A stretch of 25,237 bases of DNA, from NCBI GenBank assembly GCA_000388065.2, contig KB932203.1; one strand, 5' to 3'. Each line of letters begins with the position of its first letter. The first letter of the stretch is position 1. The notes beneath the pieces are model-generated. The model made no database searches. It saw only the letters and a list, made by a program, of their open reading frames with translations, and had not been told where the DNA came from. The stretch is from Fonticula alba ATCC 38817 (taxonomy: Eukaryota > Protista > Nucleariida). Below, in pieces: positions 1 to 22,975 of this stretch. A program made the translations under genes and the position numbers.

Positions 1-2334
1 ACACACACACACACACGCACGCACGCGCGCGCACACAGCTTCGAAATGAATTTTTCAGCAAGTTCAGCGCTTCACTGGCGCAGCTGCAGCAGGAGTACCT
101 GGATTTGGCGGCGGCGCTGGACGGGTCGGTTGATCCGGTCCACGATCCGACCCTGGCCCCGCTGCGCGGCCGCATCCGCATGGTCCTCATCCGGAGCCTC
201 CAGATGAGTGCCTACTTCTATGATCGGGAGTTCATCAGCATGATTGACAGCATTATCGAGGTGCGTGGGTCTTGCCATTCCTGCCCTTTGGCCTGGCGTG
301 TGCGCCTTCCGCGCGCGGAAAGCCAGCCACTGCCTCCGCCCCTTCGCTGGCCGGCCTTCTCGGCGATGTGTCGCATCTGGCGGCTGCCGGCTCGTGGTCA
401 CTTACCCTCCCTTTCAGAAAACCCACTTGACCGAGGACCGCCTGCTGATGCGCCTGCGTCTGCACAGCACCACCGCCCTCCAGGATCCCTCCATGGTTGT
501 CGAGGCGACGCGTCTGTTCCAGCACGCCGAGCGCAATGGTGCGTGCCGGCCCTGACCATGATCGGCACACGCTGGCCCGCGCTCTTTCTCTTGTCTCCCT
601 CTTACCAGTTGCCTCGGCCGTGCTTCACGGGCATCTCCGCGCGTGCCCCTCTCCCCCCCCCCGCCTTTCGATAATGACCCCCCGCAGGACTGTTCGAGGG
701 CCCCTTCTTCAGCCGCACCGATGCGGCCTCCTCCCTGGCCAAGGTGTACTACCGCAACCGGGACTTCGACCAGGTGGTCAGCATCCTACTCAAGGAGAAG
801 GCTCTCTCGGAGAAGAATCTCACCCTGCTGATGCACATTTGCCTCCTCCGACGTGACTACCACTCCATGTGGGTGCTGTGGGATCAGTTGAACCTGATCA
901 CCGCGCACCTGGGCGGCCCGGACTTCGTCTCGTTCAACTACGCCATCAAGTGCGCGTCGATGGTGCGTGCTCCGTCATCCATCGACCCTGGGGCCCGGGC
1001 CGGCCTCCCCTCCTTTGTCCTCCACACGCGCACACGCGCACACGCGCACACGCTAGACCGCTTGCTAATGTGCCCTGCTCGGTGCCGGCCTCCCCCTCGC
1101 TCCCCAACCACAAAGCAACAAGACCCGGCCCGCGCGTCTGGTCTCTTCCTGCGCATGCTCAACAGCTGTGGGCTTCCGCCGTCCTCCATCTTGCTCGAGA
1201 TCTTCACCTCGTTTACCCGCTGCCAGGGGGCCTTCTCCACTGTGCAGGAGATCGCCGCGCACCTCCGGCGCCATGGGACCACCATCACCCGGGACATGGC
1301 GCTCCAGATGATGGAGTCAGCCAGCCGGTCGAGCGACTTTGTCGGCCTGGTCAATCTATGGAACGAGTACTTCACCCTGTGCGTGCCAGCCCCCCCCCCC
1401 CCCCCCTCCCTCCCAAATCGGGTTTCGGCCTTCGGATATGCCGTCATGCCCGCGGTGCCCTTTTCCTTCAATACCATCACCACTGACCGGGCTTTGGCAT
1501 TCCTTCTGTCGGGCCTCTCCTCCGCTGGCGCGCTCCCTCTTGTAGGACCCCTTCTGAGAGCGACCCGCGCATTCCGGTGGACTTCGTCACCCTAAAGGCC
1601 CTGCTTGAGAGCATGAGTATCCACTGGATGCTCCCGTACATGCGCTCCATTCGCGCCAAGGAGAGCAGCGGCGACACGAAGAGTTCGTTTCCCGATCGAC
1701 CACCCCATCGCACTCCGTCCCTCGACACTTCCTTACCGGCTGCTCCTTTGCCCCCGCCCTCCCCCCTCCCCCTTTTCTTTTCCCCCTTTCGCCCTGCTCG
1801 GGTCCTTGCCCGCTCGCTTGGCTGCCTGTGTGGCCCGATGGACGCAGTTCCGGCGATGCACCACCCGCTGCACTTCCTCGAGGGGCTTCGCCAATCGCTG
1901 AACGACGCCTCCTTCCCCATCTCGCGGTCCCTGTTGCTCCTCTTTGCGCAGGTCTACTCGTCGATGTCGCGTCCGGACAAGGCGCTGGAGGTGCGTTCCG
2001 TCGGCTCTCTCGCCTCCTCGCCGGAAGGCGGAAAAGCGTCCTGGCACATCCACGAAAAGCTGACCCGATCTCCGTGCTCTCCCACTGGCCCCTGTCTCCC
2101 ACTTGCCTCCTCCCCGCCGGCAGGTCATCTTCAAGGATGTCAATCGGATGGGCGCCTTCCCCTGCTCGGGCATGATCGAGTCCCTGCTCAGCGCCCCCGG
2201 CTCCCCCATGTCAGTTTACTATGAGTCGCTGGCTCTGGCCATGACACATTGCACGCCTCTGGCCCTGGCGTATCCTGACTCGGTGGTGGCAATGGCCTTC
2301 CGTCATCCCACCCCGGGTGCCATTTTCCGCGATG

Positions 2335-2353
2335 CACGACGCTCTTCCGATCT
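2335..2353 (+). other. Illumina adapter remnant CACGACGCTCTTCCGATCT
   Basis: Exact 19-nt match to the 3' end of the Illumina read-1/universal adapter (...CTACACGACGCTCTTCCGATCT). It is absent from the clean copy at about 7560 and translates to the tell-tale RRSSDL and DALPI peptides. Confidence 0.97.
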
Positions 2354-2704
2354 TGATCGAGTCCCTGCTCAGCGCCCCCGGCTCCCCCATGTCAGTTTAC
2401 TATGAGTCGCTGGCTCTGGCCATGACACATTGCACGCCTCTGGCCCTGGCGTATCCTGACTCGGTGGTGGCAATGGCCTTCCGTCATCCCACCCCGGGTG
2501 CCATTTTCCGCGATGTGGCCACCTACACCAAGCTCTTCCCCACCACCCTGCGCAACAGCAGAGCCGGTGTTCCCTTCTTCCGGGCGCAGCCATCGCTGGC
2601 GTCAAATTTGGTGCCGCTCATGGAGAGTGCCGGGGCCCAAGAGTCGCCCCTTCGACATGAACTATCCTCCGAGTACAACAACCTCTTCAAGTGGTCTCCG
2701 CCAG

Positions 2705-2723
2705 AGATCGGAAGAGCGTCGTG
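2705..2723 (-). other. Illumina adapter remnant AGATCGGAAGAGCGTCGTG
   Basis: Exact reverse complement of the 19-mer at 2335-2353 and the standard adapter read-through sequence. It translates to RSEERR, DRKSVV and EIGRAS in the ORF track. Confidence 0.97.
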
Positions 2724-3617
2724 AGCAGAGCCGGTGTTCCCTTCTTCCGGGCGCAGCCATCGCTGGCGTCAAATTTGGTGCCGCTCATGGAGAGTGCCGG
2801 GGCCCAAGAGTCGCCCCTTCGACATGAACTATCCTCCGAGTACAACAACCTCTTCAAGTGGTCTCCGCCAGGGTCTCTGCCCGTGCGGGCGCACACCCGC
2901 TTTGCCCCGAACCGGGATCGCCGCCACACGAAGTGAAGCACCCCCCCCCCCCCCCCCGGGAGGCTGAGCCCTGGGAGCGGGGGCCTGACGCTCGACCCCT
3001 CAAGAGCCGCCAAGGCCCAGCGCCCTTCGGGGGAAGGTCTGCCTTAGATTGACCGCCGACGATGGAGCGCCACGTGCCTGCGGTCTGTGCACGCTCGCAA
3101 GCATGGGAATCTCGACCGGTCGCCTCGTGCGCCTTGTGCACAGCGTGTGCATGCGCAGGCAGGGGCATCGGGCCCTTTCGCGCGCACGCACGCACCTGCA
3201 CCCAATATACCCGCATTTCCCTTGACCCCCCTCCGCCCGCAAAGTGTCCCACGCCGCCCCGCGTCCTCCCCCTTCCCTCGTCTTGCTCACCGCCTGGCGC
3301 CGCTCTGCGATCGGACGGGGAACGCGAGGCCCGTTCCTGGTACTCCAGTACCGGCGGTCTGTTTTGCGCGTGATACTCGAGCACGCGAGCCACGCCTCTA
3401 GCCATTCCCGCTTGCTACTGCCGACTGATTCGCCCTTGTCCATCCGGTCACCGAACGCCGGTCTCTGTCCTTTTTGCGCGGGTGTCTGTGCGCGCGCGCG
3501 CGCGCGAAAGCGCGGGCTAGGAGGAGCGAACTCGCCCGCGCGCACAGCTCCGCCCATTTTTGCCTTTCGCTGGGGGTCCCGGCAGAGCCCCCCNNNNNNN
3601 NNNGGGGGGCTACGTAC

Positions 3618-4302: not shown

Positions 4303-7300
4303 ATGATGCTTTCACATGTGCTTGCCCGTGGGCCGGTCTTCGCGACGTCGCGCGCCGCGGCCCTTGCCGCCCGGGCATCGTCGGCGTCCGTGGCGCGCTT
4401 CAGCACCAGCATGCCCTACGATGACGATGGTGACGCCAGTCGGGGTGGCCATGGCAGCCACCAGCACTACGAGGACGACACGCTGGACCGGTCGATCTTC
4501 GATGACCCCAAGCAGGGGGACAACAGCTGGACCAAGAACCGGCCGCGGAAGACCGACGCCCCGCACGGCTTCGGGCTCGGGTACGGGTCACGCCCGCATG
4601 TGGGCGAGATTTCCGTGCAGCCGGCACATGCTCAGACATCCTTCCGTCGGCGGTCGGATTCCCGCCGCGACGCGGCCCCTCCCCGGCCGGAGCCCACGCC
4701 CGTGGTCAAGCAGCACCCGGTCCCGATGAACGAGGTACGCTCTCGGCACAGGCACACATGGTCGCACGCCCGCACGTGCAGTTGTCGGGGCATGAAACGA
4801 AGGGAAGGCCCCGCACGGCCAGGCACTCATGGGCTCCCTGCATGTGACCCGACCGCCCGGGACATCTGTCACTGACTTGGAGCCGCTATTTGCTTCCCGG
4901 TGTGGCAGTTTGAGCCCGACAACTCCGGCAACTCGGTCACCAGCCAGGCGTCGTATTACGGGATCCTGCCGGACGAGGTGAGCACCCCGGCCCAGGACTC
5001 CCCGTCCCATGCGTTGGATGACACGTCGGCCGTATCGAGCGACCCACTCGAGGCGGTTCTCTTCTCGACGAATGACTTCGAATCGCCGGCCGAGGCCGAG
5101 CGCTTCTTCGCCTCGCTGGAGCGCGATGGCATCCAGGTGCGTACATCGGCGGGGTTGCCTCGGCTTTTGGCTTTTTCCCGTGCCCTTGTTCGAGTCACTG
5201 GTGCATCTATGTATTAACACACACACACACACACACACACGCACGCACGCGCGCGCACACAGCTTCGAAATGAATTTTTCAGCAAGTTCAGCGCTTCACT
5301 GGCGCAGCTGCAGCAGGAGTACCTGGATTTGGCGGCGGCGCTGGACGGGTCGGTTGATCCGGTCCACGATCCGACCCTGGCCCCGCTGCGCGGCCGCATC
5401 CGCATGGTCCTCATCCGGAGCCTCCAGATGAGTGCCTACTTCTATGATCGGGAGTTCATCAGCATGATTGACAGCATTATCGAGGTGCGTGGGTCTTGCC
5501 ATTCCTGCCCTTTGGCCTGGCGTGTGCGCCTTCCGCGCGCGGAAAGCCAGCCACTGCCTCCGCCCCTTCGCTGGCCGGCCTTCTCGGCGATGTGTCGCAT
5601 CTGGCGGCTGCCGGCTCGTGGTCACTTACCCTCCCTTTCAGAAAACCCACTTGACCGAGGACCGCCTGCTGATGCGCCTGCGTCTGCACAGCACCACCGC
5701 CCTCCAGGATCCCTCCATGGTTGTCGAGGCGACGCGTCTGTTCCAGCACGCCGAGCGCAATGGTGCGTGCCGGCCCTGACCATGATCGGCACACGCTGGC
5801 CCGCGCTCTTTCTCTTGTCTCCCTCTTACCAGTTGCCTCGGCCGTGCTTCACGGGCATCTCCGCGCGTGCCCCTCTCCCCCCCCCCCGCCTTTCGATAAT
5901 GACCCCCCGCAGGACTGTTCGAGGGCCCCTTCTTCAGCCGCACCGATGCGGCCTCCTCCCTGGCCAAGGTGTACTACCGCAACCGGGACTTCGACCAGGT
6001 GGTCAGCATCCTACTCAAGGAGAAGGCTCTCTCGGAGAAGAATCTCACCCTGCTGATGCACATTTGCCTCCTCCGACGTGACTACCACTCCATGTGGGTG
6101 CTGTGGGATCAGTTGAACCTGATCACCGCGCACCTGGGCGGCCCGGACTTCGTCTCGTTCAACTACGCCATCAAGTGCGCGTCGATGGTGCGTGCTCCGT
6201 CATCCATCGACCCTGGGGCCCGGGCCGGCCTCCCCTCCTTTGTCCTCCACACGCGCACACGCGCACACGCGCACACGCTAGACCGCTTGCTAATGTGCCC
6301 TGCTCGGTGCCGGCCTCCCCCTCGCTCCCCAACCACAAAGCAACAAGACCCGGCCCGCGCGTCTGGTCTCTTCCTGCGCATGCTCAACAGCTGTGGGCTT
6401 CCGCCGTCCTCCATCTTGCTCGAGATCTTCACCTCGTTTACCCGCTGCCAGGGGGCCTTCTCCACTGTGCAGGAGATCGCCGCGCACCTCCGGCGCCATG
6501 GGACCACCATCACCCGGGACATGGCGCTCCAGATGATGGAGTCAGCCAGCCGGTCGAGCGACTTTGTCGGCCTGGTCAATCTATGGAACGAGTACTTCAC
6601 CCTGTGCGTGCCCGCCCCCCCCCCCCCCCCCCTCCCTCCCAAATCGGGTTTCGGCCTTCGGATATGCCGTCATGCCCGCGGTGCCCTTTTCCTTCAATAC
6701 CATCACCACTGACCGGGCTTTGGCATTCCTTCTGTCGGGCCTCTCCTCCGCTGGCGCGCTCCCTCTTGTAGGACCCCTTCTGAGAGCGACCCGCGCATTC
6801 CGGTGGACTTCGTCACCCTAAAGGCCCTGCTTGAGAGCATGAGTATCCACTGGATGCTCCCGTACATGCGCTCCATTCGCGCCAAGGAGAGCAGCGGCGA
6901 CACGAAGAGTTCGTTTCCCGATCGACCACCCCATCGCACTCCGTCCCTCGACACTTCCTTACCGGCTGCTCCTTTGCCCCCGCCCTCCCCCCTCCCCCTT
7001 TTCTTTTCCCCCTTTCGCCCTGCTCGGGTCCTTGCCCGCTCGCTTGGCTGCCTGTGTGGCCCGATGGACGCAGTTCCGGCGATGCACCACCCGCTGCACT
7101 TCCTCGAGGGGCTTCGCCAATCGCTGAACGACGCCTCCTTCCCCATCTCGCGGTCCCTGTTGCTCCTCTTTGCGCAGGTCTACTCGTCGATGTCGCGTCC
7201 GGACAAGGCGCTGGAGGTGCGTTCCGTCGGCTCTCTCGCCTCCTCGCCGGAAGGCGGAAAAGCGTCCTGGCACATCCACGAAAAGCTGACCCGATCTCCG

Positions 7301-7814
7301 TGCTCTCCCACTGGCCCCTGTCTCCCACTTGCCTCCTCCCCGCCGGCAGGTCATCTTCAAGGATGTCAATCGGATGGGCGCCTTCCCCTGCTCGGGCATG
7401 ATCGAGTCCCTGCTCAGCGCCCCCGGCTCCCCCATGTCAGTTTACTATGAGTCGCTGGCTCTGGCCATGACACATTGCACGCCTCTGGCCCTGGCGTATC
7501 CTGACTCGGTGGTGGCAATGGCCTTCCGTCATCCCACCCCGGGTGCCATTTTCCGCGATGTGGCCACCTACACCAAGCTCCTCCCCACCACCCTGCGCAA
7601 CAGCAGAGCCGGTGTTCCCTTCTTCCGGGCGCAGCCATCGCTGGCGTCAAATTTGGTGCCGCTCATGGAGAGTGCCGGGGCCCAAGAGTCGCCCCTTCGA
7701 CATGAACTATCCTCCGAGTACAACAACCTCTTCAAGTGGTCTCCGCCAGGGTCTCTGCCCGTGCGGGCGCACACCCGCTTTGCCCCGAACCGGGATCGCC
7801 GCCACACGAAGTGA
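4303..7814 (+). CDS. Mitochondria-targeted PPR-like (alpha-solenoid) protein, about 761 aa, 9 exons
   Basis: Exons 4303-4734, 4909-5136, 5263-5484, 5642-5762, 5913-6187, 6341-6603, 6772-6908, 7074-7216 and 7350-7814, with all GT-AG phases compatible. The N-terminus MMLSHVLARGPVFATSRAAALAARASSASVARFSTS is R/S/A-rich and acid-free, like a transit peptide. PPR-like units include PDFVSFNYAIKCASMQQDPARASGLFLRMLNSCGLPP and LLLLFAQVYSSMSRPDKALEVIFKDVNRMGAFP. Confidence 0.78.
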
Positions 7815-8465
7815 AGCACCCCCCCCCCCCCCCCCGGGAGGCTGAGCCCTGGGAGCGGGGGCCTGACGCTCGACCCCTCAAGAGCCGCCAAGGCCCAGCG
7901 CCCTTCGGGGGAAGGTCTGCCTTAGATTGACCGCCGACGATGGAGCGCCACGTGCCTGCGGTCTGTGCACGCTCGCAAGCATGGGAATCTCGACCGGTCG
8001 CCTCGTGCGCCTTGTGCACAGCGTGTGCATGCGCAGGCAGGGGCATCGGGCCCTTTCGCGCGCACGCACGCACCTGCACCCAATATACCCGCATTTCCCT
8101 TGACCCCCCTCCGCCCGCAAAGTGTCCCACGCCGCCCCGCGTCCTCCCCCTTCCCTCGTCTTGCTCACCGCCTGGCGCCGCTCTGCGATCGGACGGGGAA
8201 CGCGAGGCCCGTTCCTGGTACTCCAGTACCGGCGGTCTGTTTTGCGCGTGATACTCGAGCACGCGAGCCACGCCTCTAGCCATTCCCGCTTGCTACTGCC
8301 GACTGATTCGCCCTTGTCCATCCGGTCACCGAACGCCGGTCTCTGTCCTTTTTGCGCGGGTGTCTGTGCGCGCGCGCGCGCGCGAAAGCGCGGGCTAGGA
8401 GGAGCGAACTCGCCCGCGCGCACAGCTCCGCCCATTTTTGCCTTTCGCTGGGGGTCCCGGCAGAG

Positions 8466-8506
<41 letters not shown>
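8466..8506. repeat. Poly-C homopolymer (about 41 nt)
   Basis: Read directly. It is the same run in which duplicate copy 1 terminates at 3593. Confidence 0.95.
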
Positions 8507-9038: not shown

Positions 9039-11854
9039 ATGACCGACACATCCAGCCACCGGTACGGCGAGATGTCGTCGTCGTCGCGCTCCTCCGGCTC
9101 CGGTGCGCCCCCGCCCCTTCTCCCCCTCTCTCTCTTTCTTCCTGCCCCCTATGTCTACTATTCAGCATCTCACCGCGCCACTTGTGCTAACCCGTGTGTC
9201 CGGGTCCTCGCTGCCGCTTCTCGTTGGGCTGGCCATGGTCGATGCAGGCCGCGACCGCGAGCGCAGCGACCGTGACCGTGGTGACCGCGGCGACCGTGAC
9301 CGCGAACGCGACCGTGAGCGCGACCGCGATCGTGACCGTGACCGTGAGCGCGACCGTGAGCGCGACCGCGAACGCGACCGTGACCGTGAACGCGACCGCG
9401 ACCGTGAACGCGACCGCGACCGTGAGCGCGACCGTGATCGTGAGCGCGACCGTGAGCGCGACCGCGACCGCGGCCGCTCGTACGACAACGACGACCGCGA
9501 TCGGCGGGCTCGGTCGCGCTCGCGCTCGCCCACGCGCGACACCTACCACCGGCCTTCATCCATGGCTGGCAGTGGGTCCTCCTCGCGGCATCGGTCGTCT
9601 TCGCACACGCGTGGCCGGTCGCGCTCGCCGTCGTCCGCCACCGCTGCCACCACTCCGGGCGCCGAGTCCGGCATGCCGGACAGCCTGTGGGGCGTCCTGC
9701 CGATCGGCGTGCATGATGCCAGCATCCATGCCGATGCCTGGCTGGCCAGCTTCCAGGGGGACCTGTCGCACCTGCCCTCGGCCCTGGTGTCGCCACAGGA
9801 CTTCCCATCCCTGCTGCGCGGCGGCGGCCCCCATGGGATGGATCCATTGGCGGCGCATGCGGCCGCTGCGGCGGCCGCCGGGCACCCACTCCTGGCGGGC
9901 CAGCATCCGGGGGTGGGACTTGGGGGGCTTCCCCCGGGGGCGGCTTCGTCCATGGCGGCCGCCTATGGGATGGCCGGCATGCCGGTGGATCCGCTCATGA
10001 TGCCGTATGTGGCGGCGGCTGCAGCAGCCGCCGGCGGCCCCGGCATGATTCCCATGATGTCTCCCATGATGCTGGGGGCGACCATGCACCCTGGCCTGCC
10101 AGTTGGGGCCTACCCTGGCGGGCATTTGTCGGTGCCGTATGGCCACGGGATGGCCGGGCTCCCGCCCCCGCCACAGGGGATGCTTTTCCCCGGGGCTCCT
10201 GGCCGCGCTGGACTCGGGGGCGCCCCTCCTGGCGAACAACGCTTCCAGCGCCAGGCCAAGCGCATCCACGTTGGCAACCTCCCGCCCAACATCGAGCCGG
10301 TGCGTCAGCACGAGGGGCCCGGCAAGTCTTCATGCCGCGCCCTGTCTCTTGTGTGTGTGTGTGTGTGTGTGCCCCATCTCCAGCTGTCTGACCTTGGTGT
10401 GCCCTTTCTCCCCCTCCCCTGTCCGGCGTCTTGGATGGGTGTGCGCGGGGGCGGGGTGCCTTTCGCTGTTAGGCTCGCTTGGAGGACTTCTTCAACAAGG
10501 CGCTGGCCGAATTGCCAAATCCCCCTCCGGCCGTCAACGGGACTTATGTCATCAGCTCGCAACGGCCACTGGACAAGCAGTTTGCCTTTATTGAGGTATG
10601 CGTGCGCGTGGACCGGTGGATGGCTCTTTGTCCTTCTCCTCTTGCCGGTCCCCTGCTCAATCGCCAGACACTTGCCCGCTGACCTCCCCCCACCCTCTCC
10701 TCCACACCCGCCGCCTGGACGTGCTCAGTTCGCCACTCCCCAGATGGCAACCGCCTCGCTGAACCTCACCAATACGTTGATAGACAGTTACTCCATTCGA
10801 ATCAGCCGACCGAAGGAGTACCACGCCTTGGCCAGCCAGGGGCTGGCCACCGGGCCAGCTGCCGGGGCCGGCGGCCCGATCGGCTCCGGCACCGGGGCCG
10901 GGCCCTACGACTCGCCGGCCCCTGTGGCCCCGCCCGGCCCGGGCAAGCTCCACATCAATTCCATCCCCCGGACCATCGGCGAGAGCGAGCTCCGCACGGC
11001 CCTTGGAGCCCTGGGCCGGCTGCGGACCTTCAACCTGCCCATCAACCCGAGCAACAACTCCCACCGGGGCTTTGCCTTCGCGGAATTCGAGACCGAGGAG
11101 GAAACCCAGGCGGCCGCTCAGCGCATCAATTCGGCCCCCATCTTCGGGGCGCAGTTGTCGGCGGCTCCGGCCAATGGCCCGCTGCGGCCGGGGCCCGGGA
11201 TTTTGGGCCCCAGCGGTGTCGGGTCGGGGCTCGGTGTACCGGGAGCGTCGATCGGCGGGGTTGGCCCCGGCGGGGCCCCGGTTGTCACGTCCCAGTCACA
11301 TTCCGACCCGGGGTATGTCTCCACGGTGCTGGTCCTGGAAGATGTGCTGAGCAAGGAGGATCTGGACAACGAGGAGGAGTACAATGGTGCGTGCTTGGCC
11401 CCCGCCTGTGCCTCCCCGAACAGCGCACGCCGCATATGCACATGATGGGGGGGGGGGGGGAGGGGGGCTTATTCCAGGCTCCTTGGACAAAGGGGGTGCC
11501 TCGCGCGTGCTCTCACTCACACACGTACACACACACACACACACACGTACACACGCGCGCGCGCCTGCCGACACAGACATCGTGGCCCAGATCCGCGAGA
11601 AGTGCATGACCTACGGCTATGTGTCGAATGTGCTGATCCCCCGGTACCCGCCCTTTGGCTCGGAGGAGACGCTCGACCAGGTGGGCAAGATCTTCATCGA
11701 GTTTGCCAATGTTGAGGCGGCCCGCGAGGCTGGCGCGTCGCTATCAGAGATCCACTTCAACGAGAAGCGCATCATCACCTCCTTCCTGGACCCGGAGGAC
11801 TTCGTCAAGATCCGCAACGCGTTGTTGTCGCGCTCGCGCGGTCGGCAGATCTGA
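9039..11854 (+). CDS. U2AF2: U2 snRNP auxiliary factor large subunit (U2AF65-like), 5 exons
   Basis: Exons 9039-9102, 9248-10299, 10473-10595, 10729-11386 and 11577-11854, phases compatible. It has an N-terminal R-dipeptide domain. RRM1: AKRIHVGNLPP...LEDFFN...DKQFAFIEF...IRISRPKEY. RRM2: KLHINSIP...LRTFNL...RGFAFAEF. C-terminal UHM: VLVLEDVLSKEDLDNEEEYNDIVAQIREKCMTYGYVSNVLIPR...VGKIFIEF. The domain order and motifs match U2AF65. Confidence 0.93.
9250..9480 (+). repeat. Hexamer-based coding repeat (GACCGY/GAGCGC/GAACGC) encoding (RD/RE)n
   Basis: Visible tandem array translating to RDRERDRDRERD... in U2AF exon 2. Confidence 0.95.
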
Positions 11855-15226: not shown

Positions 15227-15564
15227 TACACACATCCACATGCAGACCTATGCACCCCTGCACGCATCAGAATGCGCAATTCAAAAGAGGCAACCGGGTG
15301 GTGGGAAATACAATACAAGTACAAGGAACGGGGGAAGGAGCGGCCAGAGGTGGGAGGGGAGGAGACGGAACAAGAGGGGAAGGAAAAGAGGAAGGAGGAC
15401 AGCCAAGAGCCAAGAGCCAGGAGCTGGAGCCAAGACCAGGACAAGGAAGGACCAACACAGAAGGAACATTGCCTGTCTTCCGTCCCGCATCAGGATGCAA
15501 AGGCCGACACATGTCACCAGCTGCCGGCCCTTGCGCTTCACACCCGGCAAGAGGGCGGCCGCTC

Positions 15565-18187
15565 TCAGGAGCTGGAGCCTTGCTCGGGCTCGACATTCAC
15601 CACATCCAAGGACCGAGCGAAAAGGGTTCGCAAAGGGACGTGGCACAGAGGGCACGAGGGAGGAGTGGGCTTGCCGCGCTCTGGGGGGACCAACACCGAC
15701 GCACAGCCCATGGTCAGCCACGGGTCGATGCAGTCACGGTGATACCGGTGGAAGCAGGGGAGGGTCCGAACGACATCGCCATCCTGGATCGAGGATCAGG
15801 CAGGGAGAACAAGGCATGGGGGGGGGNNNNNNNNNNNNNNNNNNNNNNNNNNNNNNNNNNNNNNNNNNNNNNNNNNNNNNNNNNNNNNNNNNNNNNNNNN
15901 NNNNNNNNNNNNNNNNNNNNNNNNNNNNNNNNNNNNNNNNNNNNNNNNNNNNNNNNNNNNNNNNNNNNNNNNNNNNNNNNNNNNNNNNNNNNNNNNNNNN
16001 NNNNNNNNNNNNNNNNNNNNNNNNNNNNNNNNNNNNNNNNNNNNNNNNNNNNNNNNNNNNNNNNNNNNNNNNNNNNNNNNNNNNNNNNNNNNNNNNNNNN
16101 NNNNNNNNNNNNNNNNNNNNNNNNNGGTCCATCTCCTTCTTCTTGGGGGCCTTAAGGGGCTTCTTCTTACCAGCTGAGAGAGCGCGCATACGAGAGGGGA
16201 GGGGGTGATGCATGTGTGAGACATTGGAAGCGAGGGCGGGGAGGGGCACGTACGTCGAAAGTCCACCGGCACACTTGGCACATGTCAATCTCCTCGGTGA
16301 CATGCTCGCTGGTGGGACCGGCCCCGGCACCGCCGCACGTGCAAACCGTCGTCGCGTCGGAGTCCGTGGTGGCCATGGTTGCCATGGCTTGGCAGGCACC
16401 GCATGGAGCCGCTCCCCGACTGGGAGCCGAGTACAATGACAATGGCAGCGCATACAGCAGCTGGTCGATGTTCTTGTCCAGCCCCTCCAGGTCTAGTGTC
16501 TCCGGGGCCAGGTACTCCGAATCTTCGGAGTCCGAGTCACTGTAGAACAGCTGGTCCAGGTAGTCCTGGTCCAAGTCACTGGAGTTGTTCGGGTCCGTGG
16601 CGAAGGAGCTGTCACCCAAGCCGGAGCTGCTCGAGTCATCCTCGGTTCCGGTTGTGCGCAGCAAGAGCCCGCTGGCGTCCGGAGGCGAGAGAGGCCGGGC
16701 CCCAGGGTGGGACCCGGACCGGCTACCATCGACTACCAGCAGGCTGGAATCGCTTCGAGCAAAGGCGGAATTCCGCACCTGGCCAAGAGGCCGGGAACGG
16801 CTGGGGGACTGCAGGAGAGAGAGAGAGAGGGAGGGAGAAGGAGAGAGAGAGAGAGAGAGGGAGGGAGAAGGAGAGAGAGAGAGAGAGAGAGGGAGGGAGA
16901 AGGAGAGAGAGAGAGGGGGGGGAGGGAGAAGGAGAGAGGGGGAGGGAGAAGGAGAGAAGGGGAGAGAAGAGAAGGAGAGAGAAGAGAAGGAGAGAGAGGA
17001 GAAGGAAACAGAGAGAGAGAGAGAGAGAGATGGGAACGAAGATCAGCATGATGCTAAACCACAAGAAAGGGAGGGAGGCAGACAGCAACAAGCCACACAA
17101 TCGACGGAGAATGAATACGTACACTCAGGCTGGATGACCCGCCGATGGGCTGACTCGGGGCGCGGGGACGGCTGCCACCGATATTCCCATCGGCCGAGGC
17201 CCAAGAGGCCCTATTCGGGCCGGTATGGCTGCCGGTTGCTGACAGCGAATGGGCCGAGCTGGCCGACGAGACGGACCCCGATGAGAAGGCCGGGCTCCCA
17301 GGCCGGCGGCTACCGCCACGCAGCCGGCGCAGATTCAGCGACAACGAGTGCCGGCCGATGCGCGAGCGCGAGCGAGCACGCGGCGCCCCGCCCTCCGCCT
17401 CAGGGGCACCGCCGGCCCCGGGGCCGCTGGTGGTGGCGGTCGCGGTCGCGGCGCCGGCCGAGGAGGTTGAAGGAGTCCGCCCAGCAGGGCCCGGCCGTCC
17501 GGTGGACCGGGTCCGGCGCGCCGGCTTCACCGGATAACTGAAGGGGTCTTCATCCTGATCGGCGGCAGGGCCACCGCCTGGGCCACGTCCCGAGCCGGAG
17601 CCCTGGTCCGCAGTGCGCCCAGAGTCCGAGGCCTGGACTTCCGAGCCGGAGGCAATTTGCAGCAGCGGGTCGTCCGGACGCACCACCGAATCCAGATTAA
17701 TCTGCGCGGCGGCGGAATCATCATCCCCGGCCGACATGAGGGCCATCTGCAAACGCCGAGCCAGCTCGAAGTCGGCGGCCTCGCGGCGCTGGCGCTCGGC
17801 CCGCTCGGCAGCCTCCTGCCGCGCGGTGATGGCCTGCTCCGACTCGCTGGACGACCCTGTGACATTCGCCGGGTCAGCCTCAAGCCCGGCATCCTGCAGC
17901 AGCAGCGGTGACAGGGGCGGCGGAGCGTCCCGCGCCGCGTGTTCCATGGCCGTGGCCAGGTCCGGGGCGGTTTCATACTCGAACACCAATGCAAAGCCGG
18001 CCGGATACCGCGGGTCGGCGGCCGACTTGTCGATGGCTTCGCGTCCGATGCGCAACGATGAGAAGGCAGGATCAAAGAAACCTGCAGACCGCATGTACGA
18101 TGGCCCAGGCGTAGGGAAGGGGGGAGGGGAGGACAGAGAGAGAGGCAGGGAGAGAGAGGCAGAGAGAGAGAGNNNNNNNNNNNNNNN

Positions 18188-18272
<85 letters not shown>

Positions 18273-21200
18273 AGCGGCGGCTTGGTGCTTGGGAAGGAGT
18301 CTGTTTTTGGCAGGGGGGGGAGGAAAAAAGACACCAGAGTGACACTGAGAAGAACAAACGCATGCGAGCCCCCGCCCATGCAGGTACACGCGCATGCACG
18401 CGTACGCACCGGCATGCAGTGTGAAGGTAAACATGAGCTTCGGCGGCCCGGAGCTCCGGCGATGATAGAAGCGCATGGTGACCTCGCCATCGAAGATGAC
18501 CGCGCTGGTGGCACCGCTCAGCGGCCGCAGGTCGAAGCAAATGTCCTCGGCATTGCTCAGAACAATGCGGGCCCCGCCACGGCTCGAGGGCAGGAGCAGC
18601 GTATTGAAGAGGACACCGGCGGTGCCGCCATCAGCCGGCCGGGTGCGCGCCGTGGCAATGACAAAGAGCCGCACCGTGGTCGGCTGATCCGGGTTAATCA
18701 GGTCCGCCAGGGTGGGCCGCGGGGCTGGGACCACGGCCGTGGCGGCCGTGGCGCCGGTCGTCCCCGCGGCGCCGGCAGCCCTGGTGCCCGGGTCGGCGCC
18801 GGCACCACCAGCGCCCGGGGTCTGGCTCGCAGAGGACCCATCGCCGGCTGGCGAGCCCGGGCCACTGCCACCACTGGCACCGCCACCACCGCCACCGAAG
18901 CCCAGGATCGATCGGCCCCCGGTGAAGGAGGATACACTCCGGCGAATGCTGAGCAGCCGCGACCGGAAGAAGGACATGCCGCCGGGTGGCGGGGAGTCGG
19001 CCACATCGCCCGGGCTGCCGGCTGCCAGCGTCGGTGTCGGTGTTGCTGGCGTGGGGGCGGCCGCCGCCGCCGCCGCCGCTTCGGCAGGGGCAGCAGCAGC
19101 AGGCCGACCGGGCGGGATGTGAGACTGATGATCCGGTCCCGAGCCTGGGCCCGGGGGAGCGGCCGTAGCCGAGGCCTCGGAAACCACCGGCGCCGCCGAG
19201 ACGACCGGCGTCACAGCAGCGGCGGCATCCTCGACGAGGGGGCCCGCCGCATCCGGAACCGCTGTGCCAGATGCATCGCTGCCCGCCGGGTCCACTGCCG
19301 GGGCGGTCGCGGCATCGGCGGCCGTGGTCCCGGGCTCAGATGCACCGGGCTCCGGATTGGCGGCGGTGGCGGCCACCGCAGGGGGGGCGGCCGCCGGGTC
19401 CGGGATGAAGCGCCCATAATGCGGCACACGGGCAAGACAAATGGACCGCAGCCGGACGAAATGCACCGCACGCTCGCGCACCTCCGGCAGGAAGAGCCCA
19501 TCCCCAATGAGGAGATTCGGGTCGATCGGCCGCGAGGACAGGGCCGCCCCGGGGTCGCCCATGGCCTGGGCCGACGCATGGCCGGCACCGCCGCTGCCAC
19601 GGGCGAATCGCGAAAGCGAGAAGCGCCGGCGCGAGGACGACGCCATGCTGCTGGAACCACGCGGCGAGGCGGGCCGCATCGAGGAGACACCGGCCGCCAC
19701 CGAGGGGGGGACATTCTCCGCGCGCGGGGTCCCGGGCAGCGAGGACCCCGGGGGCTGGAGCTCCGGGCTACCTGCCGGCGGGATCGGGCTATGCGCGATC
19801 GCGGGCGTGGCCGCGGCCACAGCCATGCTCATGCTGCCGGCAGGCACACCCGGCCCCGGTGACAAGTGGGACACCGTCTCATCGGACTGCTCGGCAGGGA
19901 GGCCGCCTCCCGGGGGACCACCAGTGCCGGCGGGGCCCTTGGTCGTGGGCTGCCGACCGGCCGGGGGGCCAGCGGTCTCCTCGCTCAGCATGCTGGAGAG
20001 CGCCACTCCCGGGACACTGAGAATCTGCGATGCGCCTGGTGCCCCGGTTGCCGATGACGACGAGCAGGGGGTGATCTCCTCCTCGGTGCCGGATAGCCCG
20101 GGCTCGGGGGGGATCTCGGCCGTGGCGGCGGCGGCCGCCGCCGCCGCCGCAGCCGCCGCCGCCGCCGCCACGGCCGCAGGGTTTTCCGGGATGTCGAGCA
20201 GTCGCGATGACCGATCAGCCGGCGAGGGTGACCGGCTACGCGTGGACCCGGTCGATTGCGATGCGCGACGGAGCCCGAACGACTGGACGGGAGACCCGCC
20301 GCCCGACCGGGGTGACCGGTGGCCGGAGGAGGGAGATGGCGAACCACCGGCAGCCAAGTCGCCACCCGGCGCCGGGGTGCTGGCATGGATCAGGCGCCAG
20401 AAGGAGCGCACGAAGGACAGTTGCGAGGGAGGCGGATGCCGGCCAGCCCGGCGGGGCTTCTCCGTCGAGGAGAGATAGATCTCCGAAAAGAGGAGCGCGA
20501 TCTGACCAGGGCAGGGGGGNNNNNNNNNNNNNNNNNNNNNNNNNNNNNNNNNNNNNNNNNNNNNNNNNNNNNNNNNNNNNNNNNNNNNNNNNNNNNNNNN
20601 NNNNNNNNNNNNNNNNNNNNNNNNNNNNNNNNNNNNNNNNNNNNNNNNNNNNNNNNNNNNNNNNNNNNNNNNNNNNNNNNNNNNNNNNNNNNNNNNNNNN
20701 NNNNNNNNNNNNNNNNNNNNNNNNNNNNNNNNNNNNNNNNNNNNNNNNNNNAGGGGCATGACACCGGTCAGCAAAAGGGGGCGGAGATGCTCCCCTTGCG
20801 GGAAGCTGCTGCGCATCGGGGCGGGAGGGCAGCAAAGAAGAAAGAGCCGCTGCGGAGCAGTGGGCCAGGGGGCCGGGCGAGACGCACCGACTCCGGACCG
20901 CCCATGTCGGTCAGATTGCCAATCTGGTCATTGGGCAAGTAGCCGAGCGTGTCCTGCAGGGGGAAGTGACAGTACTCGCAGGCATTCACCGGGGTGTCAT
21001 GCTCGGCCTGCTGGCTGGCCAACGGCATGTGACACCGATGGGCTGGCCGTTCGGGCCCCCCCTCGGCGGGGGGAGCCGCCGTGCCGGGCGTCAGCAGGCC
21101 CGGCGGCTGGGGCCGAGCGTCGGCCTGCGCTCGCACACAAACCGGCCGGGCACACTGGCGCAAGGACAGATGATGAGGCAGGGGGACATGCGGCAGCAGG

Positions 21201-22975
21201 GCAGCCGTGATGCAGGCCGCCACGAGGGCTGTCTCGCCCTGATCGCCGGCGCGGCCGCCGGATATCAGCACCACATGGCGAATGTCGGTCGCAAGCCAGG
21301 CACGAACCAGACTGCATTGATGGGTGACCAAAGCAGCAACATGGCCAGGGGAGAGTCAGACGCGGGTGCCGGCAGGCAAGTGTGAAGAGCAAGCAGGCAA
21401 GCAAAACAAGAGGCAGAGGCCCTGACGGGCACGCACTGGCAAATGCCGAGAATGGAGCTGAGGGTGCGCTCGGTGGGAGCACCACCGGCTGTGGCCGAGG
21501 CGCCAGAGCCATCGGCCGCTTCGGAGATGATGTCCACCGTCTGGGGGAAGGCCACACTGAGATTGCGACCGAGGCGCTCGGCCAGCTTGGCGTCGATGGA
21601 CATGCGCTGGGGGTTGGGAGACGGGGCGGCGGCCAGAAGGCCCGACAAGGCGGTGCTCGACAGGGGGAAGGCCTTGTCGCTGAGGCGCAGAATCATGACA
21701 TGCTCGGCGGCCACGGGACCAGACTCATACTCCTGGAGAATGTGTTGGATCTGTTTGGGTGGAGGGTGGAGGGGGGAGGGGGCGGACAGAGCGGACAATC
21801 GCCAGATGGTTAGAGGACTCGGGCAAGTACACTCGCGCAGATGTGCACGCGTGGGGGGGAGGGGGAGTTCATGTGTGTGTGTGTGTGGCCGACTGTCCTG
21901 CACACCAGAAGGGGCCAGCCGGGAGGACGCCCGGAGGATGGCAACACAAGGACAGGGATCCGGAGCGAAGAGGGGGAAGGGGAGGAGAAAGAGGCAATGG
22001 GCATACCGCTTCCAGGCGGGACACCTCGGCCGAAACTATGGCCGAGATGCTGGGCGCCGGCACCAGGCAGGGATCGGACCGAGTGCGCCAGAGGATGCCG
22101 ACACGCCGGGCGGCCGGGCTCTCCACCACCGCGCCCAAGGCGCTCGGGGGAACCGGGAAGGATCGGCCGAGATCCGTCACATAGGGCGAGGAATAACTCC
22201 GATAGGAGGGAGATCGACTGTCAGGGGAGGTTTGGAGATCGCCGTTCAGCAGCGAGGCAGCCAGCTCGGCGGACGAGGGGGACGTCGCGCGGGGGGCCGC
22301 AACCACGGCGGCGGCGGCGCCGCCGCCGCCGCCGCCGGGGAGGGTGCCGGAGCCCGGGTCCCCGGGCCCGGCCGAGGGGCTGCTGGCCATGCCGAGGCTG
22401 ACCGAGAGCCGGCGCATGCGCGACTGGAAGCCTGCCACCAGGGGGGATGCTTGCGACGACCGGGGCGGGCTGTTTGGGGCGGATGCCGGCCCGACCGGGC
22501 GCAAATGGTGCACCTCGGCCAGCGACGGACGAACCGGGTCCACGGCTCCGGGAGACAGTGACGGCAGGGAACTGGACGGATGTGACAGGTCATCCAGGGG
22601 GGGGATGGTCGCGGTGGCTGGCTCGGAAGATGCCGACATCATGAGGAGACGCCCGTCGGAAGGGTCCCCCGGGCATGGGGAAGGGGCACACGGAGCCCCG
22701 GTGCCTGGGCGCTCGAGGACATGGTCATACGGGACAAAGCGCAGGAAGGGGGACATCATGTGGAAGCTGGACAGCCACGCGACGGACCGGCGACCGGTTG
22801 AAGAGACGCGCGGACGTGTGGCCGCACCACCGGGCGAGAGGATCGGACAGTCGGCCGTTGGGTCGGCGGTTGCCGTGGCCGCCGACGGGGTGGCGGAAGT
22901 TGAAGCCGCTGCCGGGGTCGCTGCCGGCCCCGTGGTCGATGTCGGGGGCGGCAGAGGGAGGATCGAGGAGAACAT
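15565..22975 (-). CDS. About 1,843-aa protein: PTEN-like pseudophosphatase + PTEN-type C2 + MIU-like motif + C-terminal RING-H2 (putative E3 ubiquitin ligase); 7 exons
   Basis: Exons 22975-22007, 21750-21437, 21311-20888, 20501-18410, 18081-17123, 16808-16254 and 15783-15565. All six introns are GT-AG with compatible phases (0,2,0,1,0,0). PTEN-like motifs: ICHLVRAWLATDIRHVVLIS and PPSQLSFVRSF. C2 motifs: DGEVTMRFYH...KLMFTFTLHAGFF...IGREAIDK...RYPAGFALVFEY. RING-H2: CQVC-RWTFDDGDVVRTLP-CFHRYHRDC-IDPW...CPLC. The start codon is uncertain, and two introns span N-gaps. Confidence 0.82.
16126..16189 (-). CDS. TMA7: N-terminal segment of translation machinery-associated protein 7, running into the gap
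   Basis: Minus strand reads MRALSAGKKKPLKAPKKKEMD. GKKKPLKxPKK...KEMD is the hallmark TMA7 N-terminus (human [23 protein letters not shown], from memory). It starts either at ATG 16189 or at the acceptor ctctcAG (exon from 16173, phase 1). It is truncated by Ns at 16125. Confidence 0.78.
16814..17030. repeat. Composite (GA)n / GGGAGGGAGAAG purine repeat in intron 5 of the PTEN-RING gene
   Basis: Visible (GA)n runs with an imperfect higher-order unit of about 30 nt. It reads as (TC)n on the transcribed strand just upstream of the acceptor at 16809. Confidence 0.9.
18135..18268. repeat. (GA)n microsatellite containing a 15-N gap, in intron 4 of the PTEN-RING gene
   Basis: Read directly; Ns at 18173-18187. 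Confidence 0.9.

Follow-up and report, generated by a model that had tools for sequence, protein, structure and literature searches.

Here, we provide genomic and transcript evidence that a minus-strand gene of the nucleariid Fonticula alba ATCC 38817 is real, expressed and spliced, and that it encodes a RING-H2 finger. Its 1843-aa product probably (roughly 0.6) combines, in one chain, a PTEN-type phosphatase-like module lacking the catalytic HCX5R motif, a C2 domain, an MIU-like helix, an LP-x3-Y element and the RING-H2, with the PTEN-type module acting as a membrane localiser. The gene runs from position 22975 to 15565 of the window, the whole analysed stretch of 25,237 nucleotides from contig KB932203.1 (assembly GCA_000388065.2); all features below lie on its minus strand. 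The sequence-only reading had proposed a lipid-sensing, ubiquitin-binding E3 ligase, terms that we use by analogy with better-known proteins.

The proposed seven exons, splicing in phase into one open reading frame, were reproduced: every intron is bounded by GT..AG, the phases match, and the spliced sequence, read directly, translates into 1843 aa and has only one stop, at its end. On the 3' side, the junctions across introns 4, 5 and 6 are all confirmed by RNA contigs, which come from four runs (two samples of one study). Junctions 18410/18081 and 16254/15783 are joined exactly in contigs of all four runs, with CT..AC intron ends on the plus strand, and 17123/16808 is seen in a 1614-nt contig from which intron 5 is removed and which spans exons 7 and 6 and a portion of exon 5. 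The contigs tile from the 3' UTR to the C2 part of exon 4, with the introns at zero depth. Exon 4 (18410-20501, aa 570-1266.33) is one open frame, with RNA contigs over much of 18408-20092. It first encodes what would be the closing helices of the PTEN-like domain and then most of the C2, whose initial strands are separated from its core by an Ala/Gly/Pro insertion of ~230 aa. Exon 5 (17123-18081, aa 1267.33-1586), with both junctions in RNA contigs, completes the C2 and continues with the MIU-like helix and a linker of low complexity. It is followed by exon 6 (16254-16808, aa 1587-1771), which is covered by contigs in 4/4 runs and encodes an acidic, Ser-rich stretch, then the pre-RING segment and the opening Cys pair of the RING, and by exon 7 (15565-15783, aa 1772-1843 plus TGA), which is joined to it in RNA and supplies the remainder of the finger. 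The 3' UTR extends at least over 15300-15564; contigs reach 15456 and 15300, the latter being the end of the stretch examined with RNA, so that its length is a lower bound. Three assembly gaps fall within introns of the model (15827-16125 in intron 6, 18173-18187 in intron 4, 20520-20751 in the proposed intron 3).

When a C2 piece was compared exhaustively with 1.84 billion representatives by phmmer, a single relative emerged, located on a 51.6-kb eukaryotic contig from a bioreactor metagenome with a RING ORF ~800 nt downstream. We modelled this orthologue as a compact 2-kb gene of six exons encoding 580 aa, collinear with the Fonticula protein and with the same order of a ~185-aa N-domain, C2, D[FY]ELARxLQ, pre-RING segment and RING-H2. 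The two proteins align by blastp at 3e-23 in the C2 and 2e-13 in the RING. In shuffle tests, blocks of the N-domain reached z values of 4.1 and 3.1 and the first C2 strands one of 7.1, and the local alignment of exon 3 (z 4.1) was matched by one of 300 shuffles. Two intron positions and phases are common to both genes, the intron after Fonticula exon 2 being equivalent to orthologue intron 1 and Fonticula intron 4 to orthologue intron 3. The Fonticula protein amounts to the 580-aa core stretched by ~1260 aa of low-complexity insertions. Because a second organism has the same domain order, the PD-C2-MIU-RING architecture is strengthened. The claim that all modules share one transcript holds for exons 4-7, which are joined in RNA, and agrees with the order in the orthologue, whereas the 5' exons come from the predicted model.

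The C2 domain (17966-19466; aa ~915-935, 1165-1266 and 1267-1305) is interrupted by a low-complexity insertion and intron 4, and was therefore given to the tools in pieces, never whole. Its assignment to the PTEN type, as originally read in exons 4-5, is supported by three weak but concordant lines, namely Pfam, language-model features and the sequence-plus-shape comparison of Foldseek. PTEN_C2 (PF10409) was the top Pfam match of the 83-aa exon piece of the orthologue, in register over profile positions 24-93 of 133, with a score of 16.3 bits that lies below the curated cut-off of 27.1 and an E-value of 0.0084 over 24,736 families (~3e-7 if counted for one pre-specified family); the Fonticula C2 pieces gave no PTEN_C2 match in Pfam. 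Sequence divergence would explain both the low score and the return of no canonical PTEN by phmmer. In Atlas feature space, the ten best named matches of the C2 were all PTEN_C2 (score 0.86). Foldseek against Swiss-Prot placed C2 domains of PTEN and tensin-1/2/3 at 12 of the best 30 matches (probability 0.96-1.00, TM by query up to 0.59). When only shape is compared, the 83-aa model fits PTEN no better than generic Ig/FnIII sandwiches (Z 5-6), and no PTEN chain is among the best 50 matches listed in either VIA listing. Shape-only searches are thus not discriminating, and the structural support leans on Foldseek's sequence-aware score. PDB sequence searches with the C2 pieces and the C2 profile A1 gave no match.

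The most conserved stretch of the protein is FYHRRSSGPPKLMF (18429-18470), an invariant run in alignment A1 that, compared by eye, appears to sit where PTEN has its basic CBR3 membrane-binding loop. We propose that the dead phosphatase-C2 unit could serve as a localisation module for an anionic or phosphoinositide-rich membrane, comparable to its counterparts in auxilin/GAK, tensins and plant class II formins. Conserved basic residues would make this contact, in an RRR-type patch at the N-terminus and in the C2 loop HRRSxGPPK, which is invariant. The RING would recruit an E2 for ubiquitination of membrane-proximal targets, and the MIU-like helix might bind ubiquitin, which would either keep the ligase on cargo that already carries ubiquitin or lead to coupled or self-ubiquitination. 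A more specific proposal, which we put forward tentatively, is that the two proteins represent an undescribed, lineage-restricted PD-C2-MIU-RING E3 family in which the dead PTEN module reads PI(4,5)P2 or PIP3 and directs the ubiquitination of membrane-proximal proteins.

It is also conceivable, if rather unlikely, that the dead PTEN-C2 unit recognises proteins as the substrate adaptor of the ligase and is not a lipid sensor, for instance trapping phosphoproteins or docking on a cytoskeletal or adhesion partner in a tensin-like manner. Both orthologues lack the catalytic Cys and Arg, as pseudophosphatases do, tensin, which is linked to actin and adhesion, has a PTEN-related domain (PMC2386819), and lipid binding by the present module is something we infer. 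However, it is the basic loop of the C2 that is best conserved, the N-terminus of the orthologue has a basic RRR patch, and by eye both basic sites seem to match membrane-contact places of PTEN, which favours the membrane localiser.

For the ~185-aa N-terminal domain, a PTEN-type phosphatase-like fold is only indicated, by language-model features and motif matches made by eye. Every named Atlas match of orthologue exon 1 belongs to the Cys-phosphatase clan (Tc-R-P, PTP-SAK, Y_phosphatase, DSPc and CDKN3; 0.80-0.82, recognition 2771), and Tc-R-P and PTP-SAK also accompany PTEN_C2 in the Atlas matches of the C2 piece. By eye, the motifs L-T-Y...I..., LE.I...C..L..WL and PS(E/Q)..F...F are collinear with PTEN. 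In the orthologue the C2 begins near residue 187, directly after the N-domain, a layout resembling that of PTEN itself, whose C2 starts near residue 186; to our knowledge, PTEN_C2 is always preceded by a phosphatase-type domain. These observations argue against a 'C2 plus RING' ligase, in which only the C2 would be PTEN-related and the preceding ~185 aa would adopt another fold. We consider such a protein unlikely, even though the N-domain has no profile, PDB or structural match: the phosphatase-domain pieces matched no Pfam family at E<=10, a PDB sequence search with the N-domain pieces gave no match, and for the P-loop-side piece (second half of the N-domain) the AF2 model was unusable (pLDDT 41) and the Atlas look-up gave nothing named and relevant.

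The place of the PTEN signature HCKAGKGR, in a register against PTEN set by eye only, is taken in Fonticula by HVVLISGGRAGDQGET (21230-21277), which contains no Cys and no CX5R and is aligned with VAVLHMASEECP of the orthologue; at the aligned P-loop position, VLISGGRAGDQGE stands opposite VLHMASEECP. By regular-expression search, neither protein contains HCX5R, the Fonticula N-domain is also free of CX5R, and the one CX5R of the orthologue N-domain (CAIKRVR) is not conserved. Since HCX5R is absent from both, any phosphatase fold there would be dead. For the pseudophosphatase read in exons 2-4, the catalytic motif is absent and the Atlas matches of the orthologue point to the clan, but neither a profile nor a structure has matched it. 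Among the profiles expected in HMMER searches, zf-RING_2 was clear, PTEN_C2 stayed below the cut-off and on the orthologue piece only, and no PTP/PTEN-like profile matched.

MIU motifs are helices with a central Ala, a Leu-Gln pair and flanking acidic residues that bind the Ile44 patch of ubiquitin. The putative MIU-like motif of Fonticula, REAADFELARRLQ (17747-17785), is assigned by a 9-residue motif match, a type of motif that has no profile model to score against. Each orthologue has one copy of D[WFY]ELA..LQ, placed between C2 and RING and with the core D-[FY]-E-L-A-R-x-L-Q, and tblastx pairs the two regions. Conserved Leu-Gln is a feature of canonical MIU motifs (PMC5824887). The pre-RING segment GLDKNIDQLLYALPLSLY (16431-16484) has its counterpart in ...GLLPVTQY of the orthologue, LP-x3-Y being common to both proteins. 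Both elements that had been read between C2 and RING in Fonticula were hence located there, at the motif level, in both orthologues.

The identity of the RING-H2 finger (15643-16280, composed of 16280-16254 and 15783-15643 and split by intron 6) is firm. Both spliced products contain a complete C3H2C3 arrangement, C-x2-C...C-x-H-x2-H-x2-C...C-x2-C. Fonticula exon 7 matches Pfam zf-RING_2 at 1.5e-5 over profile positions 13-43 of 44, so that the first RING Cys pair must lie elsewhere, in exon 6, and the two halves are joined in RNA; the unsplit RING of the orthologue matches at 7e-14. PDB relatives of the latter are RNF126, ARK2C/RNF165, Arkadia, RNF13, RLIM and RNF38 (2e-15 to 1e-10), and the closest solved relatives are active E3s. 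Both RINGs retain all eight zinc ligands, together with C-x-V-C, LPC-x-H and DPWL, which are characteristic of RING-H2 domains that bind an E2. The last Cys is followed by His in Fonticula and Leu in the orthologue, as opposed to Arg in RNF126 and ARK2C, the two closest solved relatives among the alignments compared, and in the absence of this Arg intrinsic ligase activity could be low. Yet the retained elements and the strong similarity to active E3s make it improbable that the finger has a structural or binding role, its ligase activity being low or absent, and that the whole protein acts as a ubiquitin-binding scaffold.

Exons 1-3 are joined to exon 4 as a predicted model. Exon 1 (22007-22975, aa 1-323; GTATGC donor, GC3 0.80 in frame) presumably starts at 22975, the first ATG of its ORF, and is mainly Ser/Pro/Ala-rich low complexity, with the PTEN-like N-domain beginning in its final ~35 aa. 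Exon 2 (21437-21750, aa 324-427.67) would encode the N-terminal half of this domain, with AG/GT boundaries in phase and GC1/2/3 of 0.64/0.53/0.80. Exon 3 (20888-21311, aa 428.67-569), likewise placed by boundaries and phase, contains the degenerate P-loop place followed by a ~100-aa insertion missing from the orthologue. We give very little credence to a chimera in which exons 1-3 stem from another transcript, or exons are hidden in the gap at 20520-20751, with the protein in fact beginning in exon 4: RNA junction evidence is limited to junctions 4-6, contig depth is zero at 20079-20600 and the predicted acceptor of exon 4 (20501) lies 18 nt from the gap, but the last phosphatase-domain helices and the C2 already share one frame within exon 4, the 5' exons have coding-type GC1/GC2/GC3 periodicity in the proposed frame, 60% of the words sampled from 20888-21180 are present in RNA run X4, and the compact orthologue gene carries the same N-domain, with an intron equal in position and phase (...VC(R)|PLRSWL versus ...IC(H)|LVRAWL) and no conserved segment missing across the gap.

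Eroded PTEN-like domains are used for localisation in class II formins, and tensin and auxilin/GAK contain PTEN-related domains (PMC2386819). The protein described here would share with these families and with VSP/TPTE a PTEN-type C2 straight after a ~185-aa phosphatase-type domain and, with class II formins (PMC2386819), an eroded catalytic site and fusion to an unrelated effector. Where those families carry a J domain, SH2-PTB, FH1-FH2 or a voltage sensor, its effector is a RING-H2 accompanied by an MIU-like helix. C3H2C3, C-x-V-C, LPC-x-H-x-F/Y-H and D-x-WL are shared with RNF126, Arkadia/RNF111, ARK2C/RNF165, RNF13, RLIM and RNF38, which differ in their N-terminal partner domains and, in the case of RNF126 and ARK2C, in the Arg after the last Cys, and from which the Fonticula RING also departs by a 26-residue loop between its sixth and seventh ligands. 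A pre-RING LP-x3-Y/F segment is presumably also present in RNF38-type proteins. In Pib1 and RFFL/RNF34 (FYVE-type plus RING) and in the NEDD4 family (C2-WW-HECT), a lipid-binding domain tethers the ligase to a membrane. The same tethering logic would apply here with a PTEN-type pseudophosphatase-C2 in place of a FYVE or Ca2+-type C2 domain, homology to these proteins being confined to the RING. RNF168 and Rabex-5 act on chromatin or as a Rab5 GEF, and the D-[FY]-E-L-A-R-x-L-Q core resembles the Rabex-5 MIU. These two likewise combine an E3 finger and an MIU-type helix in one chain, with RING and MIU in RNF168 (PMC2699339); here the helix is putative. Order and context differ: the RING is N-terminal in RNF168, Rabex-5 uses an A20 finger, and the RING follows the MIU-like helix in the present protein.

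In the literature searched, no family that combines PTEN_C2 with a RING is described, in agreement with the earlier statement that no characterised family pairs a PTEN-like/C2 module with a RING. Two members are known so far, both from obscure organisms, and functional statements about them are all inferred; at 580 aa, the orthologue lends itself far better to experiments than the Fonticula protein with its 1843 aa. Few membrane-reading modules have been reused with catalysis switched off, and the PTEN phosphatase-C2 pair is one of them (auxilin/GAK, tensins, class II formins). A version linked to a RING and a ubiquitin-binding-like helix would add ubiquitination to its outputs and be a straightforward natural system in which to learn what such an inactive PTEN module recognises. 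If the family exists as proposed, it would constitute a ubiquitin-based output of phosphoinositide signalling, unlike every characterised use of the PTEN module.

Seven exons on the minus strand of this eukaryotic, GC-rich DNA, separated by introns with GT..AG ends and matching in phase, make up the gene: exon 1 at 22975-22007, exon 2 at 21750-21437, exon 3 at 21311-20888, exon 4 at 20501-18410, exon 5 at 18081-17123, exon 6 at 16808-16254, and exon 7 at 15783-15565. Direct reading of the spliced frame (5532 nt) gives 1843 codons followed by one terminal TGA, in line with the seven exons spliced in phase into one ORF of the sequence-only reading. The boundaries of exons 2, 3, and 4 lie 1-3 bases off those of a naive reading, and the frame is open only with the adopted set. 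Three runs of N fall within the gene (15827-16125, 18173-18187, and 20520-20751), each in a proposed intron.

RNA-derived contigs from four runs, representing two samples of one study, were mapped to 15300-20600. In all four runs, position 16254 is joined to 15783 across the gap 15827-16125 and position 18410 to 18081 across the gap 18173-18187; the segments removed at both joints have the plus-strand ends CT..AC, i.e., GT..AG on the coding strand. A single contig of 1614 nt consists of 15456-15782, 16253-16808, and 17123-17853 and thus unites exons 7 and 6 with a portion of exon 5; the MIU-like motif and the two RING halves accordingly share one assembled RNA. A series of overlapping contigs crosses the joint between exons 5 and 4 and reaches the C2-coding part of exon 4. 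The three junctions previously proposed at 18410/18081, 17123/16808, and 16254/15783 are hence all present in RNA contigs, and contig depth over the intron stretches of the mapped interval is zero. The third gap, 20520-20751, sits in intron 3, and contig depth is zero at 20079-20600. Support for junctions 1, 2, and 3, which connect exons 1-4, is indirect, as they are predicted from frame periodicity, RNA words, and homology to a metagenomic orthologue. The proposed 5' frame has GC1/GC2/GC3 values of approximately 0.64/0.53/0.80, the same pattern as in the RNA-confirmed exons, one RNA run (X4) contains 60% of the words sampled from 20888-21180, and the order of the 5' exons is supported by homology to the orthologue. 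One further RNA joint, 17425/18878 (1452 nt skipped), was rejected as an intron; its ends are GC..GG, one side spans only 20 nt, and additional letters lie in between, which resembles an assembly artefact in GC-rich, low-complexity sequence and not splicing.

Intron 6 contains a TMA7-type coding exon (..AGKKKPLKAPKKKEMD..) at 16126-16175 on the minus strand, adjoining the gap 15827-16125. This segment belongs to a far more abundant mRNA (RNA contig depth of 53-68 versus approximately 6 for the RING gene), which extends on both sides into letters not in the window, with its downstream part falling in the gap. An upstream TMA7 exon with ATG TCT GGC CGC is found nowhere in the window; the mRNA of the RING gene skips the segment cleanly. 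Either the segment is a nested gene on the same strand whose 5' exon is missing from the assembly, or a contig end was mis-joined locally. Elsewhere in the window, 1-3593 and 5225-8471 form a direct duplication of approximately 3.3-3.6 kb (99.7-100% identical) that ends at a 10-N gap (3594-3603); it reflects a segmental duplication of recent date or else an artefact of assembly. A neighboring long ORF on the plus strand (9103-11445) encodes one RRM_1 domain (4.4e-10).

Sequence searches recovered one relative of the Fonticula gene. When the C2 piece (aa 1160-1266) was compared exhaustively with 1.84 billion representative proteins in phmmer, exactly one match reached E<=0.001, a 95-aa ORF of 46% identity on a 51.6-kb eukaryotic contig (L001) from a bioreactor metagenome, with a RING-finger ORF approximately 800 nt downstream. 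Near-identical short contigs are present in other metagenomes, which suggests a wider environmental occurrence. Modeled with six exons and GT-AG introns of 45-54 nt, the orthologue is a protein of 580 aa that is collinear with the Fonticula protein. On L001, the modeled exons span 9301-9569, 9616-9966, 10021-10271, 10317-10701, 10754-10998, and 11045-11286. The two proteins match in blastp over the C2 core (3e-23) and the RING (2e-13), and shuffle tests were run for the first C2 strands (z 7.1, 0/300 shuffles) and two blocks of the N-terminal domain (block 1, z 4.1, 1/300 shuffles; block 2, z 3.1, 4/300 shuffles). Both proteins carry one copy of D[FY]ELAR.LQ in the interval between C2 and RING, and they share a phase 2 intron (...IC(H)|LVRAWL in Fonticula, ...VC(R)|PLRSWL in the orthologue) and a phase 1 intron within the C2 domain (HA(G)|FF and NS(A)|FM, respectively). 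Collinearity and common introns indicate that the Fonticula protein is the 580-aa core plus insertions rich in Ala/Ser/Gly/Pro that total approximately 1260 aa. Short motifs of the clathrin-box and DPF-like kinds are not conserved in the orthologue pair and were set aside. Apart from the gene itself, the two loci show no synteny. Homologue searches with the whole of exon 4 were swamped by low-complexity words and gave no match, those with a two-sequence C2 profile and with orthologue exon 1 found the orthologue itself only, and a metagenome scan with the C2 profile found the same organism only. Positions 1-20288 of L001 have 61% GC, introns of 45-54 nt, and GTACG/GTGCG donors as in Fonticula; neighboring genes encode myosin-PH, WD40, F-box, EF-hand, and AAA-bromodomain proteins.

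The RING-H2 finger is complete, in line with the initial description. All eight zinc-ligand positions are present in the spliced Fonticula product, the splice between exons 6 and 7 is present in RNA, and the last exon of the orthologue matches the full zf-RING_2 profile (7e-14) as well as the solved RING-H2 domains of RNF126, ARK2C/RNF165, Arkadia, RNF13, ZNRF3, RLIM, and RNF38 (2e-15 to 1e-10). Fonticula exon 7 alone matches profile positions 13-43 only, because the first Cys pair is encoded in exon 6, and this partial RING was the sole Pfam match when each Fonticula exon was searched separately. Among the alignments listed, the two closest solved relatives carry Arg directly behind the last Cys, where Fonticula has His and the orthologue Leu, a caveat on the predicted activity of the RING.

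Three lines of evidence, each weak alone, agree that the C2 domain is of the PTEN type. First, PF10409 (PTEN_C2) is the top Pfam match of the 83-aa exon piece of the orthologue (E 0.0084 over 24,736 families), aligned at profile positions 24-93 of 133, the expected place for that piece; for PTEN_C2 alone, the one family named beforehand in the sequence-only reading, E would be approximately 3e-7, but the score (16.3 bits) falls short of the curated value of 27.1. Second, the ten best named clusters retrieved with language-model features of the Fonticula C2 piece from the Atlas library are all PTEN_C2 (0.86). Third, the AlphaFold model of the 83-aa piece (pLDDT 73, four strands) retrieves C2 regions of PTEN (frog, rat, and mouse) and of tensin-1, -2, and -3 as 12 of its best 30 Foldseek matches in Swiss-Prot (probability 0.96-1.00, TM by query <=0.59, rmsd down to 2.8), to which the cluster library adds formin, CnrN, and a tensin-like protein. 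In shape-only searches with this model (Foldseek against PDB, VIA, and Atlas by shape), Ig/FnIII beta-sandwiches scored equally high (Z 5-6); such matches of the model are generic sandwiches and not diagnostic. As an intron splits the domain in both genes, C2 was searched as exon pieces. Searches of PDB sequences with these pieces and with the two-sequence profile A1 (phmmer/hmmsearch) gave chance antibody/CitE matches or nothing.

The phosphatase-like domain is the weakest part of the architecture. No Pfam family matches any piece of it at E<=10, phmmer/hmmsearch of the orthologue exon 2 piece against PDB sequences yielded no match, and an Atlas look-up with exon 2 found no relevant family; the AlphaFold (AF2) model of this piece, on the P-loop side, has a pLDDT of 41. 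Atlas recognition of orthologue exon 1, however, is high (2771), and its named neighbors are all Cys-phosphatases (Tc-R-P, PTP-SAK, Y_phosphatase, CDKN3, DSPc, and PTP-like phytase), of which Tc-R-P and PTP-SAK also accompany PTEN_C2 among the neighbors of the Fonticula C2 piece. By-eye comparison with human PTEN suggests three collinear matching stretches: a basic patch that leads into L-T-Y...I...P, then LE.I...C..L..WL directly before a V-A-V-L-H strand, and P-S-(E/Q)..F...F preceding C2. At approximately 185 aa, the domain is about as long as its counterpart in PTEN. In the by-eye register, the position of PTEN HCKAGKGR is occupied by VLISGGRAGDQGE in Fonticula and VLHMASEECP in the orthologue, and a motif search of both proteins found no HCX5R. 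Should the fold prove to be phosphatase-like, the domain would be a pseudophosphatase. Between the helices flanking the presumed dead P-loop region, Fonticula has a specific insertion of approximately 100 aa (20888-21180, minus strand; aa ~471-569), which is absent from the orthologue, not of low complexity, and represented by words in RNA run X4; its Cys/His cluster (H-R-C-H ... C-E-Y-C-H) could bind a metal.

Every part of this protein is of a known kind, and the combination of PTEN_C2 and RING is new to us. No description of such a family was found in the literature searched, and the combination is possibly undescribed. Conservation across the protein peaks in C2 at FYHRRS.GPPKLMF, which sits by eye at the basic CBR3 membrane loop of PTEN. 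Tensin and auxilin/GAK contain PTEN-related domains, and plant class II formins use eroded PTEN-like domains for localization (PMC2386819). RNF168 combines a RING with an MIU (PMC2699339), and canonical MIUs conserve a Leu-Gln pair (PMC5824887). From the formin, tensin, and RNF168 precedents and the conserved basic stretch in C2, we infer that the whole protein is most likely a membrane-recruited RING-H2 ligase, in which the dead PTEN-C2 unit would provide the membrane address and the MIU-like helix would bind ubiquitin.
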